Positions 1,181 to 12,458 of a stretch of 13,669 nt of DNA are shown in pieces. The position numbers and the translations under genes are program-made. The notes beneath the pieces were generated by a model. That model was not told where the DNA came from, ran no database searches, and was given only the letters and a program-made list of their open reading frames with translations. This DNA is from Sulfolobus ellipsoid virus 1 and six more viruses of crenarchaea. Every line of letters begins with the position of its first letter. Position 1 is the first letter of the stretch. The stretch is taken from the IMG/VR virus record IMGVR_UViG_2974636107_000001, positions 1-13,669 of that record, one strand, 5' to 3'.

Positions 1181-1534
1181 TGAGCAGAATAGACAAAGAA
1201 GTAAAGAAAATAATGCAAATATATAGAGGCACTGAAGGCTCAGTGCAATGATAATGACCTAGAATGTTGGCTTAAGAAGGCGGTAATTATGGCAGAGCTG
1301 AATAAGGCTATCGACAAGCTGACATATAAATTGGCAATGAATTACCCATATACGGCAGACATTGCTGAAAAGCTGATAGAATTAGGATTAATTAGACAGG
1401 AGAAGTGGCTGAAGGCAATTAATGACACAAAGAGGTTTAAAGATAAGATATTGGACAAGCGTAATTCTAACAATAAAATAGAAAAATCAGAGAATACAGG
1501 AGAGAATCATGATAATAATCAAGACCAAAAATAG
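1177..1534 (+). CDS. Helical hypothetical protein (~118 aa) interrupted by a +1 frameshift near 1214-1226 (ORF track shows only 1289..1534)
   Basis: ATGA-coupled start at 1177 ([15 protein letters not shown]) stops at 1251. The 1289 frame is open from 1214 ([28 protein letters not shown]...). Confidence 0.6.
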
Positions 1535-1850
1535 AGAATATACGATAGATGAGAATAAGGAGATAAATTCCATAAGTGCAGCTGATACTATATGTCCATA
1601 TCGTGCATATCGGTCGTATCATAGAAAAATCCCAATAAAAATCGACGATTGTAAAGAGGCGAGAAAGATAGCTGGGAGCATGACGCATTACGTCATATTG
1701 CGACAGCTAAAGGAGCAGGGATGTGAGACGGAAAAGATAGTTGACCCAGAGCTGAAGTTTAGAGCTGATGCTATATGTGATGGGGACGCATTGTTGAGAT
1801 TAAGACAAACTTCAATCGGGACTGGCATGCGCTTAATAAGTGGCAATTGA
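1509..1850 (+). CDS. TP1: N-terminal part of a Cas4-family nuclease, described as TTV1 nucleocapsid protein TP1 (113 aa)
   Basis: GGAG SD upstream. Contains the first Fe-S Cys (ICPYRAY), GxxxH (GSMTHY) and motif II (RADAICDG). Length and sequence match my recollection of TTV1 TP1. Confidence 0.85.
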   Translation: MIIIKTKNREYTIDENKEINSISAADTICPYRAYRSYHRKIPIKIDDCKEARKIAGSMTHYVILRQLKEQGCETEKIVDPELKFRADAICDGDALLRLRQTSIGTGMRLISGN

Positions 1851-2077
1851 AAGTGTATATAGCGCTGGCAGGTGCTGAGAGAGGACACCTAATATACATT
1901 AACAATGGCATAAGGACGACAATACAAATGGACGAAGAGGAGCGAGTAAAAATTACTGAGTATGTTAGAAATCTGATAAGACGAATAAAAAATGGAGAAG
2001 CTGTGGAGGAGAGGAATAGAGGAATATGGTGTAACATATGCGAATTTAAAGCTGAATGTAATCATAAATTGCTATGA
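1781..2077 (+). CDS. cas4: C-terminal part of the Cas4-family nuclease in the -1 frame (ORF track calls 1847..2077)
   Basis: Frame open from 1781: GRIVEIKT (ExK), WQLKVY (QxxxY), [10 protein letters not shown] (CxxC-x5-C of the Fe-S cluster). Confidence 0.9.
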
Positions 2078-2286
2078 AGGCGAAAGAAGTCATAGAGATA
2101 CTGGAAATCATAATATACATTGTAGTAGTGCCAAGCCTTATAGTTTATTATGTTTCACATAATACGGTATATGTAGCAATAACGGTAACATTAACATTGA
2201 ATTTAGCAAGGAAGACTTATAGTACAAAGAAAAAGATTGAAAAAATGATGAAGAAAGTAGAAAAGGCGCTCGAGTTTTTCTCATGA
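2074..2286 (+). CDS. Small membrane protein (70 aa): two hydrophobic segments and a basic amphipathic C-terminus
   Basis: ATGA overlaps at both ends. Hydrophobic IIIYIVVVPSLIVYY and VYVAITVTLTL, then KKKIEKMMKKVEKALEFFS. Confidence 0.75.
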   Translation: MKAKEVIEILEIIIYIVVVPSLIVYYVSHNTVYVAITVTLTLNLARKTYSTKKKIEKMMKKVEKALEFFS

Positions 2287-2671
2287 GGGTATACACAATT
2301 AGGGATGACAGAATAGTATACCTAGGAGAATATGAGCTAGTGCCAATGCCCAAGCTGGAAGACGATATTGCGGCCATTAAAGGAAGCATAATAGCGTATG
2401 TGTTAAATAGTAATTATTCAAGTTTCATTGGTGCACTGAAGGATACAAAAGAAATGGAGTTAATTGAAAATTTAGCATATGAATTACACCAGAATATAGA
2501 CAGGACACCGACACTCACACGATACTATTATTTACTCATGAAAGTCTATGGGATGCATGGTTCAATCTTGTCTCAATTTTAACTTACATAAGTTTCGAAA
2601 TAGAAGATATAAACAATTTAATTTATGGATTTGGAAAGACGACCGTAATGCAGAAGCTCATAGGAAAGTAA
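2283..2671 (+). CDS. Hypothetical protein (~129 aa) with a probable -1 frameshift between 2483 and 2582
   Basis: ORF 2283..2582. A second frame is open 2483-2671 (..THESLWDAWFNLVSILTYISFEIEDINNLIYGFGKTTVMQKLIGK*), has no start until 2648 and ends just before the capsid promoter. Confidence 0.6.
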
Positions 2672-2673
2672 AT

Positions 2674-2688
2674 GAAAAAGTTTATAAA
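2674..2688 (+). promoter_or_regulatory. BRE + TATA promoter of the major capsid operon
   Basis: GAAAAAG-TTTATAAA, with ATG 2708 20 nt downstream (leaderless spacing). Confidence 0.75.
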
Positions 2689-2707
2689 TAGATTGTTACT
2701 TATGCTT

Positions 2708-3076
2708 ATGTCAGTAGTTGTTGGAAGAATTGCTGGAGCTAATGAGTTGGAAATGCGGTACCAAGCTGGGATTGAGGTTAAACGTGATGTTCAAGTCAAA
2801 AGAGTTGAGAGAAAGATATCGTATAGAGCGCCTAGAATAGAGGACGCAATAGCGTTGAACATATATGTTGAGGATAAGATTAGTGGAATTAAGCCGTATA
2901 TACCTGGTCTAACGGGATTGGTAAGAAAGGCGATTAAAATAGCATATCGTGATGGGGTTGACAGTGCAATGAATATATTTAAGTCATATGATACCGCAAT
3001 ACAGAATGAAATAAGGAAAATAATCGAAGAGGGTCTAAAAATGTATGAAAAAATAAGGAGTGAGGGTAGGCCATGA
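2708..3076 (+). CDS. Major capsid protein 1 homolog (PFV VP1/MCP1-like, SIRV2-fold family), 122 aa from MSVVVGR
   Basis: Basic helical protein behind a strong promoter and coupled to MCP2. MSVV..R...A..L......GIE and PYIPGLTGLVRK resemble my recollection of Pyrobaculum filamentous virus MCP1. The ORF-track start (2672) lies upstream of the TATA box. Confidence 0.7.
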   Translation: MSVVVGRIAGANELEMRYQAGIEVKRDVQVKRVERKISYRAPRIEDAIALNIYVEDKISGIKPYIPGLTGLVRKAIKIAYRDGVDSAMNIFKSYDTAIQNEIRKIIEEGLKMYEKIRSEGRP

Positions 3077-3498
3077 GCTCCCCTATAATTAGTAATTATC
3101 TTGAGGGAATTCGCGATAATAAATATCTGCAACGGATAGAATGGGAAATACAGGTAGCTCAGAGCGGATTCAGAGCTATTCCAATTACTGAGAGATGGTG
3201 GGGTGAGGCATCATATTATATAGACCTAGCCAACAAGATAAAGGCTTTGCCCGAATTGAGCAATGTTAAGACTAAGCCGATTGGATATGCGTTGGCCGCG
3301 GCGAGATACGTTAAACACAACAACTTCGGCATGGCCGAGATATACCTTGATAGATTTGAGTCTGCGCTTGTCCGTAGCGGACTGTCGAGAGATATGGCGA
3401 GAAGGGTTAGAGAGCATGTGGCAAAAATGATAGGGCTTGGTGGTGGAGGCGGTGGTGGAGGAGGCGGTGGAGGCGGTGGTGGAGTAAGTTTGCCTTAA
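3073..3498 (+). CDS. TP2: Major capsid/nucleocapsid protein 2 (probably TP2), 141 aa with C-terminal poly-Gly tail
   Basis: ATGA-coupled to MCP1. Basic helical protein ending in Gly15-VSLP, as I recall for tristromavirus MCP2. Confidence 0.75.
   Translation: MSSPIISNYLEGIRDNKYLQRIEWEIQVAQSGFRAIPITERWWGEASYYIDLANKIKALPELSNVKTKPIGYALAAARYVKHNNFGMAEIYLDRFESALVRSGLSRDMARRVREHVAKMIGLGGGGGGGGGGGGGGGVSLP
3439..3483 (+). repeat. (GGN)15 poly-glycine coding tract
   Basis: ggt/gga/ggc codons, 45 nt, in frame. Confidence 0.95.
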
Positions 3499-3940: not shown

Positions 3941-4044
3941 ATACATTGTTTGACCCAGTTGAAGTAGACATAATGGCCCAGTATATGGCCATTTATATTA
4001 TGAGCAAAAGAGATAAAGAGTTGATGAGTGCGTTAATGCTATGA
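3937..4044 (+). CDS. Small hypothetical protein (35 aa, MNTLFDPVEVDIMAQYMAIYIMSKRDKELMSALML)
   Basis: GTGA overlap at the 5' end and ATGA overlap at the 3' end. Exactly fills the gap. Confidence 0.6.
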   Translation: MNTLFDPVEVDIMAQYMAIYIMSKRDKELMSALML

Positions 4045-4460
4045 AAGTACTTAGGTTAGGATTCACCGATAAATATATCGAGAAGCAGGAGCCTATCGAT
4101 GTAGTATTCGATAAGTACCAGCCGCTTGGATATGTAGCTGTAGTTGAATTACCTTCGAGGATACCGTGGATAATCGAGATTCAGAGGAGGGAATGGATAG
4201 AAAGGTTCATAACAATGCCGCGTGACATATTTAGAGAATTATCATTTGACATAATTATACTGAGGAGAAAGCTGGAGCCTACTCCTCAATATCGTATGAT
4301 AAGGGATATAGTGTCAGATTTAAGACAGTCAAGAGGATATGCGAGCGGGATGGTGATACTGCCTAATGGACTAACATATGATGGGGACCTGCTTGAAGGT
4401 ATAGAAGTTATGGAAGGAGTTGATGTAATAGCCTATACGTTGGGTCTAATCGATTTCTAA
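4041..4460 (+). CDS. Hypothetical protein (139 aa)
   Basis: ORF track entry, translationally coupled to the upstream ORF. Confidence 0.75.
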   Translation: MKVLRLGFTDKYIEKQEPIDVVFDKYQPLGYVAVVELPSRIPWIIEIQRREWIERFITMPRDIFRELSFDIIILRRKLEPTPQYRMIRDIVSDLRQSRGYASGMVILPNGLTYDGDLLEGIEVMEGVDVIAYTLGLIDF

Positions 4461-4936: not shown

Positions 4937-5016
4937 TGAAGGTTAAATTTAAGGAAAAGATATACTTTATACCGCCATTTAGGGAGAAAGATTTAAATAC
5001 CATGGATAGTAATTAG
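4933..5016 (+). CDS. Possible 27-aa peptide (MMKVKFKEKIYFIPPFREKDLNTMDSN)
   Basis: ATGA overlap with the upstream stop, but it overlaps the TP3 promoter. Confidence 0.3.
   Translation: MMKVKFKEKIYFIPPFREKDLNTMDSN
4985..4999 (+). promoter_or_regulatory. BRE + TATA promoter of TP3
   Basis: AGAAAGA-TTTAAATA, with ATG 5021 about 22 nt downstream. Confidence 0.7.
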
Positions 5017-5020
5017 GACA

Positions 5021-5503
5021 ATGGTTGAGATTAAACTAGTTAATAAGGAAATAATAAAGTTTGGATTGGCACTTGGAATTGTGAATGAGCTTAATGAATA
5101 CCTATACGCGGCAATGCCTCCAATGTATGACATATTATCTAAATTGTACGGATATGGAAGGACTGTAAATGCAATGCTGTATAGTGTGCTGTTTAATTTA
5201 CTCGAATCGAGGATTGATACACTGAGAAGACTTGACCTTAGTAAGTTCTTTGCTGTGGTAGCATATATGGATGCTGTTAAAGATACCGTTGAGCTTGCAA
5301 TAAATGGATATGCATATGTTACGACTTCTGGATTTACAGTGTATCCTGCATCACAGATTACAGGAACGTATGAGAGCGACTTCAGTCAAGCTAAGGCAGT
5401 ACCCGCAAATACTACAGCAACACAGGTGTGGTTTGCACCCAAGAAGTTTGCTTTGATTACACAGAATAAGATATATACATTCCTAGCTCCTTATTGGTTC
5501 TAA
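5021..5503 (+). CDS. TP3: Envelope/matrix structural protein TP3 (160 aa, PFV VP3-like)
   Basis: Hydrophobic helical protein with its own strong promoter. Length matches my recollection of TTV1 TP3. Confidence 0.7.
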   Translation: MVEIKLVNKEIIKFGLALGIVNELNEYLYAAMPPMYDILSKLYGYGRTVNAMLYSVLFNLLESRIDTLRRLDLSKFFAVVAYMDAVKDTVELAINGYAYVTTSGFTVYPASQITGTYESDFSQAKAVPANTTATQVWFAPKKFALITQNKIYTFLAPYWF

Positions 5504-6504: not shown

Positions 6505-7630
6505 TGCTGTTTTTTACTAATATGATAGTTGACGGAAATTACACAGTATACGAGGATGCAAATTTAGCAATATATATACCTCCAGGTTCAGATTTTGATT
6601 ATATCTTTACCAAAAATGGGCAATTTATTCTACAGATAATTGCTCAAGGTATTGGTGTAATATTTCAGCAAACAGTAAATTATACTGGGCCAGGATTATA
6701 TAAATTCCAGGTAAGTAGCGGTGGAGTAATAACTCAAATAACGCCAATAACAATAGATATAATAATAGGGAATAATATAGTAATATATGAGTTTCAAGGA
6801 ATTATAATACCTGGAGATCAAGCGAGCACAATGGGACTTACAGTTAATGAAGTATCATATCCAGGACAAGGACTATTTATTGTACAAGGATATCCATGGT
6901 ATATGTACAATCCTAATTATCCAGTCGTATTTGCGCCGATTGGATATACTGGATTGTTTATGGGTATCGATAACGTTGTAATGGAGAGACGCACGGTCAG
7001 CCCAACTAATATGTTTTTACAGCCAGACGGAAAAGTGCCATATGCGTATCAATTGACCATAACGATACAGAATGCTAATGCACAGCAGATAATACAGGCC
7101 TTCAATCAAGCTATTGAGTTTGCAGCTGGGATGGGAGCTGTTGCGTATGAAATTACATCAAATAATCAAATTACATTCTACATAATCTTCATATCGCCAA
7201 CATCTTGGTGGGTAGTAGCTTTAGTATTTGTAGTTGCATTAGCCCTTTTGGCCGCGGCTGTTTTTGTGGATAAGTTAACGAAAGGAGTAGCAATGGACAT
7301 GCAGGCGCAGGCGATATCAAATGCATATAATGCAAATACGCAAGCGTTTCAGCAGTGTATTTCCAGCTGTTATCAGCAGACGTCTGGAAGGACGCAATGC
7401 ATAAACAATTGTTATGCTAATTACGTGAAAGTTTTAACGATGTTGGGAGCGCAGTTTGGTTCACTAAATCAAGTTCTAAGTCAGCCAACTCTAAGCTTTA
7501 GTGGACAGACGAATGTTAGCGTGCAAACTAACTGGGCAACGGTAGCGGCGTTACGTTGATAATAGGTGGTGCGGGGGTAGCGTGGGGTATCTATGAGTGG
7601 AAGAAGAAGAAAAAGAGTAAAACACAGTAA
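6501..7630 (+). CDS. Membrane/virion protein (352 aa as annotated, ~376 aa after a -1 frameshift at about 7553)
   Basis: Beta-rich N-terminus, TM helix WWVVALVFVVALALLAAAVFV and twin CxxxC motifs. The -1 frame continues TLIIGGAGVAWGIYEWKKKKKSKTQ* (stop at 7630). Confidence 0.75.
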
Positions 7631-7660: not shown

Positions 7661-8362
7661 GTGATAGTAGGTATAACTGATAAATATGTATTTCATTCAA
7701 AACCATTTTCAGCAACTAAGAAGTTTCTAAGATATAAAGATAAAATACATGTATATACTGGCCCAATTTACTTTCTATCTTCAAACATAGATTTGAACTC
7801 ACTTAAGTACTTAATGTCGGATGTAGGATATTGTAGTCCACCAGGTAAGAACAATAGTGACTATCTTACAGCATTCCATTGTGTATCGAGGGAGATGTGC
7901 AATATAGTGAGTAATATACAATTATCGGACGGGACGAAAGTGAATGTAATAAAGACGCCATATATGAAACACTGTAGTAATATTTTATGTAGATTACTAT
8001 TCGAGATTGGACTGAATAGGTTATTTCCAATGTGTATAGAAGATGAAGATTTAGCATGGATAAGTGCTGGGAATAATATTGGACCTACTAAAGGAGTATT
8101 ATTTGCAGGTTCTCTAGGTTCGATATATGGTAGTATTGCAATATTTAGTGGAGATTTAATAGTAGGAAAGAAATACAAGGTGATATCTAGAGATTTCTAC
8201 ATAGGAAAGACAATAGAGTGGGAAACGACTATAAATGGGAAAGGAATATTTTATGTTCTTTATGAAAATGGAAAAGGAATTTGGATAAGAGGATATTACA
8301 GCTTTCCAACGCAGGTTAGGATAAAACCTGGATTCTCTGGAAGCCCAGTGATTGAGGAGTAA
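7661..8362 (+). CDS. Trypsin/chymotrypsin-like serine protease
   Basis: Triad motifs in order: YLTAFHCV (His), EDEDLAWI (Asp), KPGFSGSPVI (Ser). Confidence 0.85.
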   Translation: MIVGITDKYVFHSKPFSATKKFLRYKDKIHVYTGPIYFLSSNIDLNSLKYLMSDVGYCSPPGKNNSDYLTAFHCVSREMCNIVSNIQLSDGTKVNVIKTPYMKHCSNILCRLLFEIGLNRLFPMCIEDEDLAWISAGNNIGPTKGVLFAGSLGSIYGSIAIFSGDLIVGKKYKVISRDFYIGKTIEWETTINGKGIFYVLYENGKGIWIRGYYSFPTQVRIKPGFSGSPVIEE

Positions 8363-8998: not shown

Positions 8999-10005
8999 TT
9001 TTGGGTATTAGTGCATATAGAAAAGAAACAAAAACGGGTCTGAGAAACACGATTTATACGGCAATAAATACGGGAAAAGTAAAGAAGATACTTCTGGGAC
9101 TCGATAAACCTGAAGATAAGGAGATATTCAACGACATAATAAACGAATTTAAAGACTATATTATAGACGTAGTATACGCAGAAGGATTGGGAGCTAATAG
9201 AAATGAACTATTAGTACGTGGTTCTGAAGAAAATGAAGACTACATATGCTTGGCTGACAGCCACCTATACTTCATTACACCAGTGGCAGACATAGTTAAA
9301 ACGATGTGTAACTCTCAGGCATGTGATTTCAAACGATTTGACTTTGGATTTGATGTTGAGAACAACCCACTATCAGTACTTAATAGATCGGTACATCACT
9401 TCGGTCAGTTTAATATCGACAGGTTGGCCAATAACTATATCTTCAGTTGTGAATACAAATACTATGCCAATAATCCATTCTTATGCTTCAAGAAAAGCGC
9501 AATTAAGGAGCTACTTAATATATATGGAGGAAAAATAATACCGTGGCAACACTATGGAGCTGATATGGAACAGATATACGTTTCAATAGTGAGAAGATAT
9601 GGGAGAACAGCTGGCAAATGTATCGGAACTTCACCAATATACGGACATAGAGCTACTGTAAGTAATACTGAACATGAATTTTGGAAATCGAGATGGACGA
9701 TTAAAGATTATAGCGAAGGATGGTATCAAGCAAATGCGTGCTTCCTTGCACTTCATATACCTCGAGAGTTGTGGAATCTGAAACCAAGAATATTTGAACC
9801 AGACAAATGTAAATTACATATAAACTTTATAAAATCGACTCTAGAGGATTCCCAAGCTTCTTCTAGAGGTACCGCATCGATGATATATGCAGTTGATGGA
9901 ATAGATAGAAACATACTTAACTATCTAGGTAAATATACGGCTGATAGTACTGGAACTGTAAGCTTAACCAATCTTCAACCTGGTAAATATATAGCTATTG
10001 AGTAA
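8995..10005 (+). CDS. GT-A fold glycosyltransferase (GT2-like, DSH motif); C-terminal ~55 aa unreliable
   Basis: MILGISAY strand, [15 protein letters not shown] and [15 protein letters not shown] motifs. It spans the vector-like insert at 9834-9881. Confidence 0.85.
9834..9881. other. Polylinker-like insert at a ClaI junction (probable artefact)
   Basis: ATCGACTCTAGAGGATTCCCAAGCTT...GGTACC..ATCGAT packs XbaI, HindIII and KpnI sites. The first 15 nt after A (TCGACTCTAGAGGAT) match the pUC polylinker. Confidence 0.8.
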
Positions 10006-10006
10006 T

Positions 10007-11089
10007 GTGTCGTACCAAATAACTATAAATAATAATACTACAAGTAACGTTCAAAATATAGTTATAGCTGATCCTAATCTAGCATCTTTAGGTGAAAATG
10101 TAGTATTTAGTGATTCTCAAGGACCATTATCATCGTTGTATGTATATGATGGTGTATGGGTAGTTAAATTAAGGTCACCGCTTTCACCTGGACAGAGTAT
10201 AACAATAACAGCATCTAGTGGTACACCTAATATAGACCCCACAATAGCACTATACTATAATAATGGAAGCTCATATTCAAACCTTACACTAGTAGGTTCA
10301 CCTACAGTATCTATTGTACAGGACTTTGGTGGATATGCAATAAGTGCATATGCATCTGGGGACTTCTTCTTAGTAGCATCGCCTACTGGATTTACTCCAA
10401 GTAGCAGTAGACTACTAGTTGTTGATAGATGGGCAACTACTCCTACGAGTCTTGACGCAGTAGGTTTGAGGTTATATGCAGATACTAACGACTGGTTCGG
10501 TGTAGTTAGGAAATATATTAATGGAGCTCAGAATGTAAGCATTGAACAAAAGATATCTGGAACATATTCAGTAGTAAATGAAATAGATATATCACAGTTT
10601 GCGGCATTTACTGATCCATTAGTAATGTACTTATCAATAAATGGAAGTACTGCAAACGTAAAGGTATACAAACAGGGCTCAAACATTGGAACTGTAAGTG
10701 GTAACTATTCTACTACTCCATATGGAAATCCATCTATGGCAGGATATGGAACAGTTGATAAGCATTATGCTAACTTTATTGTGTTACCATATGAGCCAGA
10801 CCCACAGGTAACAGTTACTCCTATATCTTCACCATCTCCTACTCCTACACCGACACCGACGCCTACGCCTACACCGACATATGATATCACTTATGTAGTA
10901 TTTGATGTAACGCCTTCACCTACTCCAACTCCTACTCTTACATCGACACCCACTCCTACTCCTACGCCAACATATGATATAACTTATGTAATATTCGATG
11001 TAACACCTTCACCCACACCTACTCCAACACCTACTCCTACACCAACTCCGACGCCAACTCCTACATCGACAACGTCATCTAACATCTAG
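10007..11089 (+). CDS. TPX: TPX surface protein (360 aa from GTG): DUF2341-like N-terminus, beta-sandwich/lectin-like domain, Thr-Pro stalk; anchor in the +1 frame to 11222
   Basis: [20 protein letters not shown] resembles DUF2341. Thr-Pro blocks are separated by YDITYV(V/I)FDV. Matches my recollection of TTV1 TPX. Confidence 0.85.
10832..11066 (+). repeat. Three Thr-Pro blocks separated by two copies of a 10-codon spacer (93-bp period)
   Basis: acatatgatatcacttatgtagtatttgatgtaacgccttcacc at 10877 and acatatgatataacttatgtaatattcgatgtaacaccttcacc at 10970. Confidence 0.95.
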
Positions 11090-11523: not shown

Positions 11524-11844
11524 ATGATAGCTGAGCAGATATTTATAATAATATTAGTATTAACAGTACTACACACGGCGATTGAAAGGATAGCTAAGCG
11601 TAGTCTATCATATAGTAATGTAAATTACACATATACTCAGTCGATATCGTTCTTAGTGGGATATACTATAGTTTACATAATTATGTCACATATAAGCCAT
11701 GCGGTCATTATATCTATAATGATTATGATATCATATGCGATATATATTGTAATTAAGATGAGAAATAATCAGCAAATACAGAACGATATTGAGATGTTTA
11801 TGTTTGGAATGATAGCTGGACTAGGTATAGAGATAGTAGGATAA
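11524..11844 (+). CDS. Multi-pass membrane protein (106 aa)
   Basis: Three to four hydrophobic segments. Confidence 0.75.
   Translation: MIAEQIFIIILVLTVLHTAIERIAKRSLSYSNVNYTYTQSISFLVGYTIVYIIMSHISHAVIISIMIMISYAIYIVIKMRNNQQIQNDIEMFMFGMIAGLGIEIVG
11779..11835 (+). repeat. Diverged direct repeat, copy 1 (encodes QNDIEMFMFGMIAGLGIEI)
   Basis: 45/57 nt identical to 12459-12515 in a gapless manual alignment. Confidence 0.85.
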
Positions 11845-11854
11845 AGTATATAAA
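11843..11854 (+). promoter_or_regulatory. BRE + TATA in front of the Thr-Pro cassette
   Basis: AAAG-TATATAAA, with GTA 11874 at the 20-nt spacing where other genes have their start codon. Confidence 0.55.
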
Positions 11855-11873
11855 TAAGTAGGAATTAATTAGC

Positions 11874-12458
11874 GTATCTGCAACTCCAACGCCTACGCCT
11901 ACACCCACACCAACGCCAACTCCGACGCCTACTCCTACCCCTACTCCGACACCTACGCCGACTCCCACTCCAACACCTACTCCGACTCCGACACCTACTC
12001 CAACACCAACGCCAACTCCGACACCGACTCCAACGCCAACGCCTACTCCTACACCAACCCCAACACCTACCCCTACTCCTACACCTACGCCGACTCCGAC
12101 TCCGACACCCACTCCTACGCCTACTCCGACTCCTACCCCAACTCCTACTCCCACTCCCACCCCTACTCCGACTCCAACACCGACTCCGACACCTACTCCG
12201 ACGCCTACTCCGACTCCAACGCCGACTCCTACACCAACGCCTTCACCTACACCAACTCCCACCCCTACTCCGACTCCGACGCCAACTCCGACTCCCACTC
12301 CAACGCCTACACCAACTCCGACGTCATGTAAACCGATAATTACTACTGGAGTATCATGGTTAGATACAACGATAATATGTGCTGGAAGTGTTGGTATTTC
12401 GCTATTTGAAATATTACTATCAATACTAGTAATACTGCTTATAATAGCACTGATATAA
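11874..12458 (+). pseudogene. Start-less TPX-like cassette: (Thr-Pro)~73 plus a C-terminal membrane anchor
   Basis: Frame open 11862-12458 with no ATG/GTG/TTG start before the tract. Ends [44 protein letters not shown]. Confidence 0.75.
11883..12323 (+). repeat. 441-nt (ACN CCN)n Thr-Pro repeat with a single Ser
   Basis: 147 codons alternating T/P using all synonymous codons. One TCA at about 12243. Confidence 0.97.

Follow-up and report, generated by a model that had tools for sequence, protein, structure and literature searches.

The virus TTV1 raises the question of which proteins build its nucleocapsid. The virus family to which it belongs was founded on TTV1, whose protein TP1, encoded by the N-terminal part of a Cas4-like nuclease gene, is quoted as the first case in which an enzyme became a capsid protein. 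The stretch analysed here (IMG/VR record IMGVR_UViG_2974636107_000001; in the following, the window) corresponds to X14855, the partial genome of TTV1, with a length of 13.7 kb. An earlier note on this sequence had proposed that it contains a canonical operon for the major capsid proteins MCP1 and MCP2, and had questioned on these grounds whether TP1 ever replaced MCP1. Our analysis confirmed the operon: judged by sequence and profile homology, synteny, an ATGA overlap of the two genes and a poly-glycine tail, positions 2675-3498 hold the operon of TTV1 that is orthologous to the major-capsid operon of the tristromaviruses.

The first gene of this operon (2708..3076, plus strand), which we assign as the MCP1 (VP1) orthologue by homology and selection, encodes a protein of 122 amino acids (aa; 13.9 kDa, pI 9.6), which starts with MSVVVGRIAGANELEMRYQAGIE and contains 23 lysine and arginine residues versus 17 aspartate and glutamate residues. 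In a BLASTP comparison it is matched from end to end by VP1, the MCP1 of Pyrobaculum filamentous virus 1 (PFV1; L003:6640-7026), with an E-value of 1e-5, an identity of 30% and 15% gaps. The two strings of a PFV protein that had been given in the earlier note were found to be correct, as PFV1 VP1 does contain MSVVTTRARIAETLTEKHTLGIE and, further on, PYLPGINGI. The gapless alignment which had been claimed for the N-terminus holds for the first 23 residues, ten of which are identical, but the alignment over the full length requires gaps.

Among 1.84 billion representative proteins, which were searched exhaustively with a profile, only six real relatives of MCP1 came to light, all of them 121-138 aa long; another match, P0005 (2094 aa with LNNLS repeats), was dropped as a low-complexity false positive. 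The protein P0004 bridges the two sides, with BLASTP E-values of 7e-21 to TTV1 MCP1 and 3e-8 to PFV1 VP1. When a profile was built from the TTV1 side (TTV1, P0002 and P0004), VP1 of PFV2 (6v7b_A) was its top match among 177,635 PDB sequences, with an E-value of 2.7e-6 over residues 1-117, and the comparison of the TTV1-side with the PFV-side MCP1 set by hhalign scored 95.2% with an E-value of 2.7e-8. The similarity to PFV MCP1 is therefore significant in the pairwise comparison as well as at the profile level. Searches with the TTV1 sequence as single query gave 6v7b_A at an E-value of 0.64 in phmmer against the PDB, which is not significant, no relevant match in PHROGs, and a match to the Pfam family PF25634 (PFV_capsid) of 12.6 bits (E-value 0.14, model positions 11-114 of 129). 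Seven of the eight aligned members of the MCP1 family match PF25634 at an E-value of 1 or less, and all family-invariant residues are retained in the TTV1 protein.

In comparison with MCP1 of PFV1 and PFV2 (VP1; 6V7B chain A; PF25634), TTV1 MCP1 belongs to a like length class (122 versus 129 aa) and has in common with it an N-terminus of the form MSVV..R...A......GIE, the motif PY(I/L)PG..G, a C-terminal Y...R..R and a basic charge. Both genes also take the equal genomic slot, directly upstream of and overlapping MCP2 and downstream of a conserved BRE/TATA box. About 12 internal residues of the PFV proteins (VVATDSWRVGIT) have no counterpart in TTV1 MCP1, and the identity between the proteins is only about 23-30%. 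For the PFV protein a structure has been solved.

The closest comparison is provided by L001, a TTV1-like Logan contig of 1,577 bp from run SRR31758307, which is 75% identical in DNA sequence to positions 1648-3202 of the window and shows an identical gene order. Among the collections searched, this contig is apparently the sole close relative of TTV1. TTV1 or PFV matches were absent from the 'phages' collection, both by DNA and by protein, and no further TTV1-like loci were found by MCP1-based and Cas4-based pattern scans of the JGI metagenome contigs and the GTDB genomes. A word-indexed protein search returned an empty result for MCP2 residues 1-122, in which the query itself was not recovered either, and for TP1 residues 1-92 the query alone was recovered.

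With the help of L001 the start of MCP1 could be placed. The longest open reading frame (ORF) across the region is 2672..3076, which would give a protein of 134 aa, and this reading is found in UniProt as P19288, 'Uncharacterized 15.4 kDa protein [TTV1 strain KRA1]', which came up as the self-match in BFVD. We rejected it, since its start is missing in L001 and the TATA box falls within the reading, which counts against a start at 2672. The conserved ATG at 2708, which gives 122 aa, was taken as the start instead because MCP1 of L001 begins at the equivalent methionine and has no in-frame ATG upstream of it.

The second gene (3073..3498, plus strand) encodes a protein of 141 aa (15.3 kDa, pI 9.6), for which profile homology and synteny point to an orthologue of MCP2 (VP2). 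Its C-terminus reads ...IGL-G15-VSLP, the run of 15 glycine codons (3439..3483, residues 123-137) being predicted to be disordered. For the comparison, the gene directly 3' of each MCP1 homologue was taken at eight loci, among them L004:710-1126, L006:556-1017, L009:511-909, L010:9544-9951 (L010 is a 12-kb contig) and, in PFV1 (L003), 7026-7460. A pairwise BLASTP search of the 141-aa ORF against PFV1 VP2 gave no match, and a hidden Markov model (HMM) of the TTV1-side MCP2 did not detect PFV MCP2 (6V7B chain B) in the PDB. The homology emerges only at the level of profile-profile comparison, where the TTV1-like and PFV-like sets are matched by hhalign with 97.75% and an E-value of 1.3e-12, and through the bridging sequence of L004, whose ORF is matched by TTV1 MCP2 with an E-value of 7e-21 and in turn matches the MCP2-like ORF of L010 with an E-value of 2e-6.

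MCP2 of TTV1 and of PFV1 and PFV2 (VP2; 6V7B chain B) are near in length (141 versus 145 aa) and share the N-terminal M-S..(V)YL..I...Y and W motifs, the poly-glycine tail, the position and the overlap. The N-terminal tyrosine and tryptophan positions are conserved in the alignment of the eight loci, and a glycine-rich tail of variable length was found in all full-length homologues; the word 'glycine' is not used in the paper on the PFV2 structure. One member of the MCP2 family shows a weak match (E-value 0.012) to PF21660, the C-terminal domain of the rudivirus and lipothrixvirus capsid proteins (MCP_C).

The two genes are tightly arranged. The stop codon TGA of MCP1 (3074-3076) overlaps the ATG of MCP2 (3073-3075) as ATGA, so that the coupling of a basic 122-aa ORF (pI 9.58) to a glycine-tailed MCP2, as described in the earlier note, is borne out at 3073-3076. 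Such a 4-nt overlap exists in seven of eight lineages, and MCP2 always lies directly 3' of MCP1. Just before the ATG of MCP2, within the 3' end of MCP1, there is a purine-rich, Shine-Dalgarno-like stretch, GGAGTGAGGGTAG (3057..3069, plus strand), which may serve coupled translation.

Upstream of MCP1, the sequence AAAAAGTTTATAAA at 2675-2688 (plus strand; AAAAAG TTTATAAA) is a good archaeal BRE/TATA element which ends 20 nt 5' of the MCP1 ATG, and its sequence and conservation mark it as the putative promoter of the operon: the pattern (G)AAA(A/G)GTTTATA(T)A is kept at an equal distance from the ATG in eight tristromavirus-like loci. Exact matches of RAAARNTTTAWAWA occur twice in the window, as the MCP1 promoter and at 4986-4999 before the TP3 gene, and with up to one mismatch four matches were counted, compared to 1.15 expected from shuffled sequences. 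The copy at 4986-4999 stands 22 nt upstream of the start of TP3 (VP3-like) at 5021. TP3 is a known major virion protein, and the second exact copy in front of its gene suggests one late structural promoter type. Since no Shine-Dalgarno-like motif was seen between the BRE/TATA box and the MCP1 ATG, a leaderless or near-leaderless mRNA is predicted for MCP1. The strong leaderless promoter of the earlier note thus stands as far as the BRE/TATA element is concerned, while leaderless transcription remains a prediction.

The wider surroundings are conserved as well. TTV1, PFV1 and L010 are collinear from about position 486 of the window up to TP3/VP3, with a pair of conserved ORFs at the beginning, then Cas4, the gene of a small membrane protein, further genes, MCP1, MCP2, further genes and finally VP3/TP3.

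The pattern of substitutions between TTV1 and L001 speaks for a functional gene. Third codon positions account for 55 of the 81 substitutions in MCP1, for which the ratio of nonsynonymous to synonymous divergence (dN/dS) is 0.07. With P0004 as outgroup, four unique amino-acid changes were counted for TTV1 and four for L001, which indicates neither relaxation nor acceleration on the TTV1 branch. The capsid gene pair is under strong purifying selection, without relaxation on the TTV1 branch. That the 122-aa ORF is a non-expressed relic which merely resembles a gene is exceedingly improbable; although it is labelled 'uncharacterized' in UniProt, the third-position bias, the low dN/dS and the equal branch rates all stand against this, as do its start, promoter and overlap with MCP2, every one of which is conserved. 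Had TP1 assumed the role of MCP1, a relaxation of MCP1 would be expected, and with both genes intact and under purifying selection nothing in the genome points to a loss or replacement of MCP1.

Structure predictions were made as AlphaFold2 (AF2) monomer models with an alignment of 8 sequences. The MCP1 model (pLDDT 77.9) consists of a long N-terminal helix (residues 2-59) and helices at 68-82, 84-91 and 96-118 forming a helical bundle, and the MCP2 model (pLDDT 73.7) of six helices, with residues 125-141, the glycine tail, below a pLDDT of 50. In BFVD, the best non-self match of MCP1 was the predicted PFV2 'Major capsid protein 1' with a TM-score of 0.66, a probability of 1.0 and an E-value of 1.5e-2, which is the one structural match in support of the SIRV2-like fold expected in the earlier note. 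The extended N-terminal helix and C-terminal bundle predicted for TTV1 MCP1 would correspond to the architecture of the SIRV2-fold capsid proteins of Rudiviridae and Lipothrixviridae (Adnaviria; AFV1 ORF140, 3FBZ). However, no significant sequence or structure match to these was obtained from the TTV1 proteins: among the 50 PDB matches listed for MCP1, the best TM-score was 0.47, to the AFV1 MCP (3fbz_A) with an E-value of 5.8, and the tie of the TTV1 proteins to the SIRV2 fold rests on the published comparison of the PFV2 structure.

What these proteins might do in TTV1 can be pictured from PFV2, the nucleocapsids of PFV being made of VP1 and VP2. In the PFV2 structure (6V7B), each asymmetric unit holds a single MCP1/MCP2 heterodimer bound to 12 bp of A-form DNA, the rise is 2.86 Å, and VP3 is membrane-associated; orthologues of all three PFV2 proteins (MCP1, MCP2 and VP3) are present in TTV1. 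By analogy, two basic helical proteins would be made in approximately equal amounts and would pair as heterodimers, each of which would use its N-terminal helices to wrap 12 bp of A-form DNA; from the polymerisation of these units a helical nucleocapsid would arise, which a layer of TP3/VP3 and a lipid envelope would then cover. If the PFV2 packing (12 bp per 2.86 Å) is applied to a genome of about 16 kb, a length of about 381 nm is obtained, compared to the 400 nm reported for the TTV1 virion (Krupovic 2015). We infer the expression level, the formation of the heterodimer, the wrapping of DNA and the presence of both proteins in the virion, and we consider it probable, with good confidence, that the DNA-wrapping heterodimer in the nucleocapsid of TTV1 is the product of this operon.

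Several points speak against this view and have to be set beside it. In the literature TP1 is assigned to 1509..1850, probably on the basis of protein chemistry. The single TTV1 MCP1 sequence, at 12.6 bits, misses the gathering threshold of PF25634 (27 bits), the profiles were shallow, being built from 3 to 5 sequences, and the selection tests had L001 as the one close relative for comparison. In addition, Foldseek searches of the PDB with the MCP1 and MCP2 monomer models gave chance-level matches only, and 6V7B was absent among the 50 PDB matches listed for MCP1. In the virion, the shape of these two proteins would be set by the DNA and by the partner protein.

In a rival view, TP1, the N-terminal fragment of Cas4, took over the role of MCP1 and pairs with MCP2, and MCP1 either persists for another purpose, such as that of an assembly factor or a minor component, or is about to be lost. 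TP1 and TP2 were described as equimolar, basic, DNA-binding nucleocapsid proteins, TP1 having a size of about 14 kDa, and TP1 was mapped to 1509..1850 (plus strand; 113 aa), the size on the gel being taken as a confirmation of the gene (Krupovic 2015). In favour of this view, the product of the TP1 ORF (12.9 kDa) is indeed basic, with a pI of 8.9, and the split Cas4 is found in TTV1 only. Nevertheless, MCP1 is intact, with its invariant residues kept, a dN/dS of 0.07 and no acceleration on the TTV1 branch, and it still overlaps MCP2 behind a conserved, strong promoter. The TP1 ORF shows another picture: its start at 1509 overlaps the end of an upstream 81-aa ORF (1289-1534) and is preceded by a GGAG-like motif, and the window scan found no exact BRE/TATA match before it. 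With a GGAG-like motif in place of the consensus BRE/TATA box, TP1 looks like an internal operon gene rather than a strongly promoted capsid gene. The argument from the 14-kDa size does not help this view either, as it suits MCP1 with its 13.9 kDa at least as well as the 12.9-kDa product of the TP1 ORF. We regard the replacement of MCP1 by TP1 as unlikely, and the genome sequence argues against it.

A further point concerns the TP1 ORF itself, whose C-terminal tail evolved in another reading frame. Its last 21 codons or so, from about 1781-1790 on, represent conserved Cas4 sequence that is read out of frame, and a tblastn search of TTV1 with the L001 Cas4 located the frame change at 1784-1787. 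The three-frame translation shows the rest of Cas4 in a second frame (1780..2077, plus strand), with motif III (E-x-K) and QhxxY intact, and this frame runs on into the 'gp7' ORF (1847/1853..2077) with its three C-terminal cysteines; the end at 2077 agrees with the placement of 'gp7' at nt 1853-2074 of X14855 by Krupovic et al. 2015. Searched separately from the TP1 piece and not joined to it, the second frame is 80% identical to the continuous ORF of L001, matches residues 88-181 of PFV1 Cas4 with a BLASTP E-value of 4.8e-11 and reaches 25.2 bits for Pfam PF01930, above the cut-off of 22.7. The RecB motifs of Cas4 (D, E-x-K and QhxxY) and its four cysteines are thus all present in TTV1, but spread over two frames.

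In its relatives the gene is a single ORF. In L001, Cas4 runs without interruption over the TP1/gp7 junction and contains EIVEIK as well as QLKVY, and intact genes encode 189 aa in PFV1 and 195 aa in L010, the latter with a PF01930 match. With these tristromavirus Cas4 genes of PFV1 and L010, the TP1 ORF and the second frame of TTV1 are collinear and located in the equal genomic slot, whereas the TTV1 record is broken by a frame switch. The earlier note's description of a repairable Cas4 is well supported by the intact continuation in TTV1 and by three unsplit relatives. Reading the last codons of the TP1 ORF out of frame is what produces the truncated QhxxY and, in motif III, the Glu-to-Arg change which had been described for TP1 (Krupovic 2015).

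The Cas4 split is a small frameshift, and the frame downstream of it has not decayed. Within 1788-1846, i.e. 5' of the gp7 start, 10 of 15 substitutions fall at position 3 of the gp7 frame and 2 of 15 at position 3 of the TP1 frame, and in the gp7 frame dN is 0.077 with dS saturated. From the three amino-acid differences over the 19 codons of this segment, a rough Poisson bound can be derived, according to which the break, if it is real, is not older than about a tenth of the TTV1-L001 divergence. A tail which evolved in the other frame means that the truncated product is either very young or an artefact. Programmed -1 frameshifting at this site is highly unlikely, as no canonical slippery heptamer was seen around 1780-1790.

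A second break is found about 700 nt away, in the gene directly 5' of the capsid operon. This gene (2283..2671, plus strand), annotated as a 99-aa ORF at 2283..2582, is one continuous ORF of 128 aa in L001, and in tblastn it appears in frame 3 for 2283-2486 and in frame 2 for 2483-2668, each part about 84-87% identical to L001, with the break at about 2483-2488. The dN/dS is 0.09 on both sides of it. Both breaks are small length differences, indivisible by three, at G/C-containing spots.

It is nearly an even chance that both breaks, the Cas4 split and the one at about 2485, are base-calling errors of manual sequencing in 1989, in which case TTV1 would have a normal Cas4 of about 189 codons and the features of a 'truncated, catalytically dead Cas4' would be artefacts. 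Two such frame switches within about 700 nt are in line with this, as are the downstream frames with 80-87% identity to L001, a dN/dS below about 0.1 and saturated synonymous sites, the intact motif III and QhxxY in the second frame, and the summed length of the pieces before and after the shift, which at about 189 codons equals that of PFV1 Cas4. A genuine but very recent frameshift in the laboratory isolate would, however, suit the data just as well, so that both breaks fit errors and recent lesions equally well. An error has also been argued against from the gel size of TP1, although this argument presupposes the assignment of the gene (Krupovic 2015).

If TTV1 carries the MCP1/MCP2 nucleocapsid that we prefer, the published protein data need another explanation, and either the historical 14-kDa 'TP1' band contains MCP1, or TP1 is an additional virion-associated protein. 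With 13.9 and 15.3 kDa and a pI of 9.6 each, the overlapping MCP1/MCP2 pair would match the description of TP1 and TP2 as equimolar and basic. Neumann et al. in 1989 reportedly assigned the TP1 gene, probably by N-terminal protein sequencing; if so, a Cas4-derived polypeptide was truly in the virion preparations and could be an accessory protein. Met-Ser starts are typically processed and N-acetylated in crenarchaea and hence blocked to Edman degradation. Both MCP1 and MCP2 begin with Met-Ser and may therefore be blocked at their N-termini, which would explain why they were missed. The true capsid proteins would then have given no Edman signal, a minor unblocked protein would have been read, and the 14-kDa band would have been given to the Cas4 ORF, whose 'truncation' and 'dead active site' would stem from the base-calling error or a very recent lesion. 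That the case for an exaptation of TP1 from Cas4 is in this way partly or largely an artefact, with a canonical MCP1/MCP2 nucleocapsid and a misassigned 14-kDa band, is a tentative suggestion which we hold to be possible, with the balance somewhat against it.

For TP2, we take the masses given by the international committee for virus taxonomy (ICTV) to be 12.9, 16.3, 18.1 and 24.5 kDa, the 16.3-kDa protein presumably being TP2. A 139-aa ORF at 4041..4460 has a calculated mass of 16.34 kDa; it is acidic (pI 4.9) and gave no BLASTP match in PFV1. The mass, as we presume it to be, would point to this ORF. The basic character described for TP2 would fit the 141-aa ORF rather than that at 4041..4460.

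Some other features were observed in the window. The 233-aa ORF at 7661-8362 ends with ...KPGFSGSPV and resembles in this a 230-aa ORF of PFV1 (L003:7986-8678) which ends with ...KPGFSGSNV; a similarly placed 245-aa ORF in the corresponding downstream gene block of L006 carries PF25658 (FV_peptidase). The TTV1 ORF is located downstream of TP3, unlike in PFV1. Low-complexity sequences unrelated to the operon are the long (PT)n repeats towards the C-terminus of an ORF of 363 aa (9998-11089, plus strand) and the 166-aa ORF coding for (GV)n (11798-12298, minus strand).

Taken by itself, the operon is simply orthologous to the MCP1/MCP2 operon of PFV, and the 'nine shared gene products' that have been reported for the two viruses PFV1 and TTV1 may already include the homology of the TTV1 ORF with PFV VP1. 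What is added here to the literature consulted is the proof of MCP2 homology at the profile level, a TTV1-like relative with an unsplit Cas4, the demonstration that the frameshifted part of Cas4 is undecayed and keeps its active-site motif intact when read in the other frame, and a second break nearby. When the exaptation of TP1 was proposed, no close relative of TTV1 was known, and Reviewer 3 of that paper requested relatives from metagenomes, whereupon the authors agreed that it would be of interest to have an intermediate (Krupovic 2015). L001 is a relative of this kind, and its Cas4 is not split. Hence the well-known notion that MCP1 was replaced by TP1, as a broken Cas4 nuclease, calls for another test. 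If TTV1 uses an MCP1/MCP2 heterodimer, the exaptation story needs re-examination, and one nucleocapsid design would be common to all known tristromaviruses.

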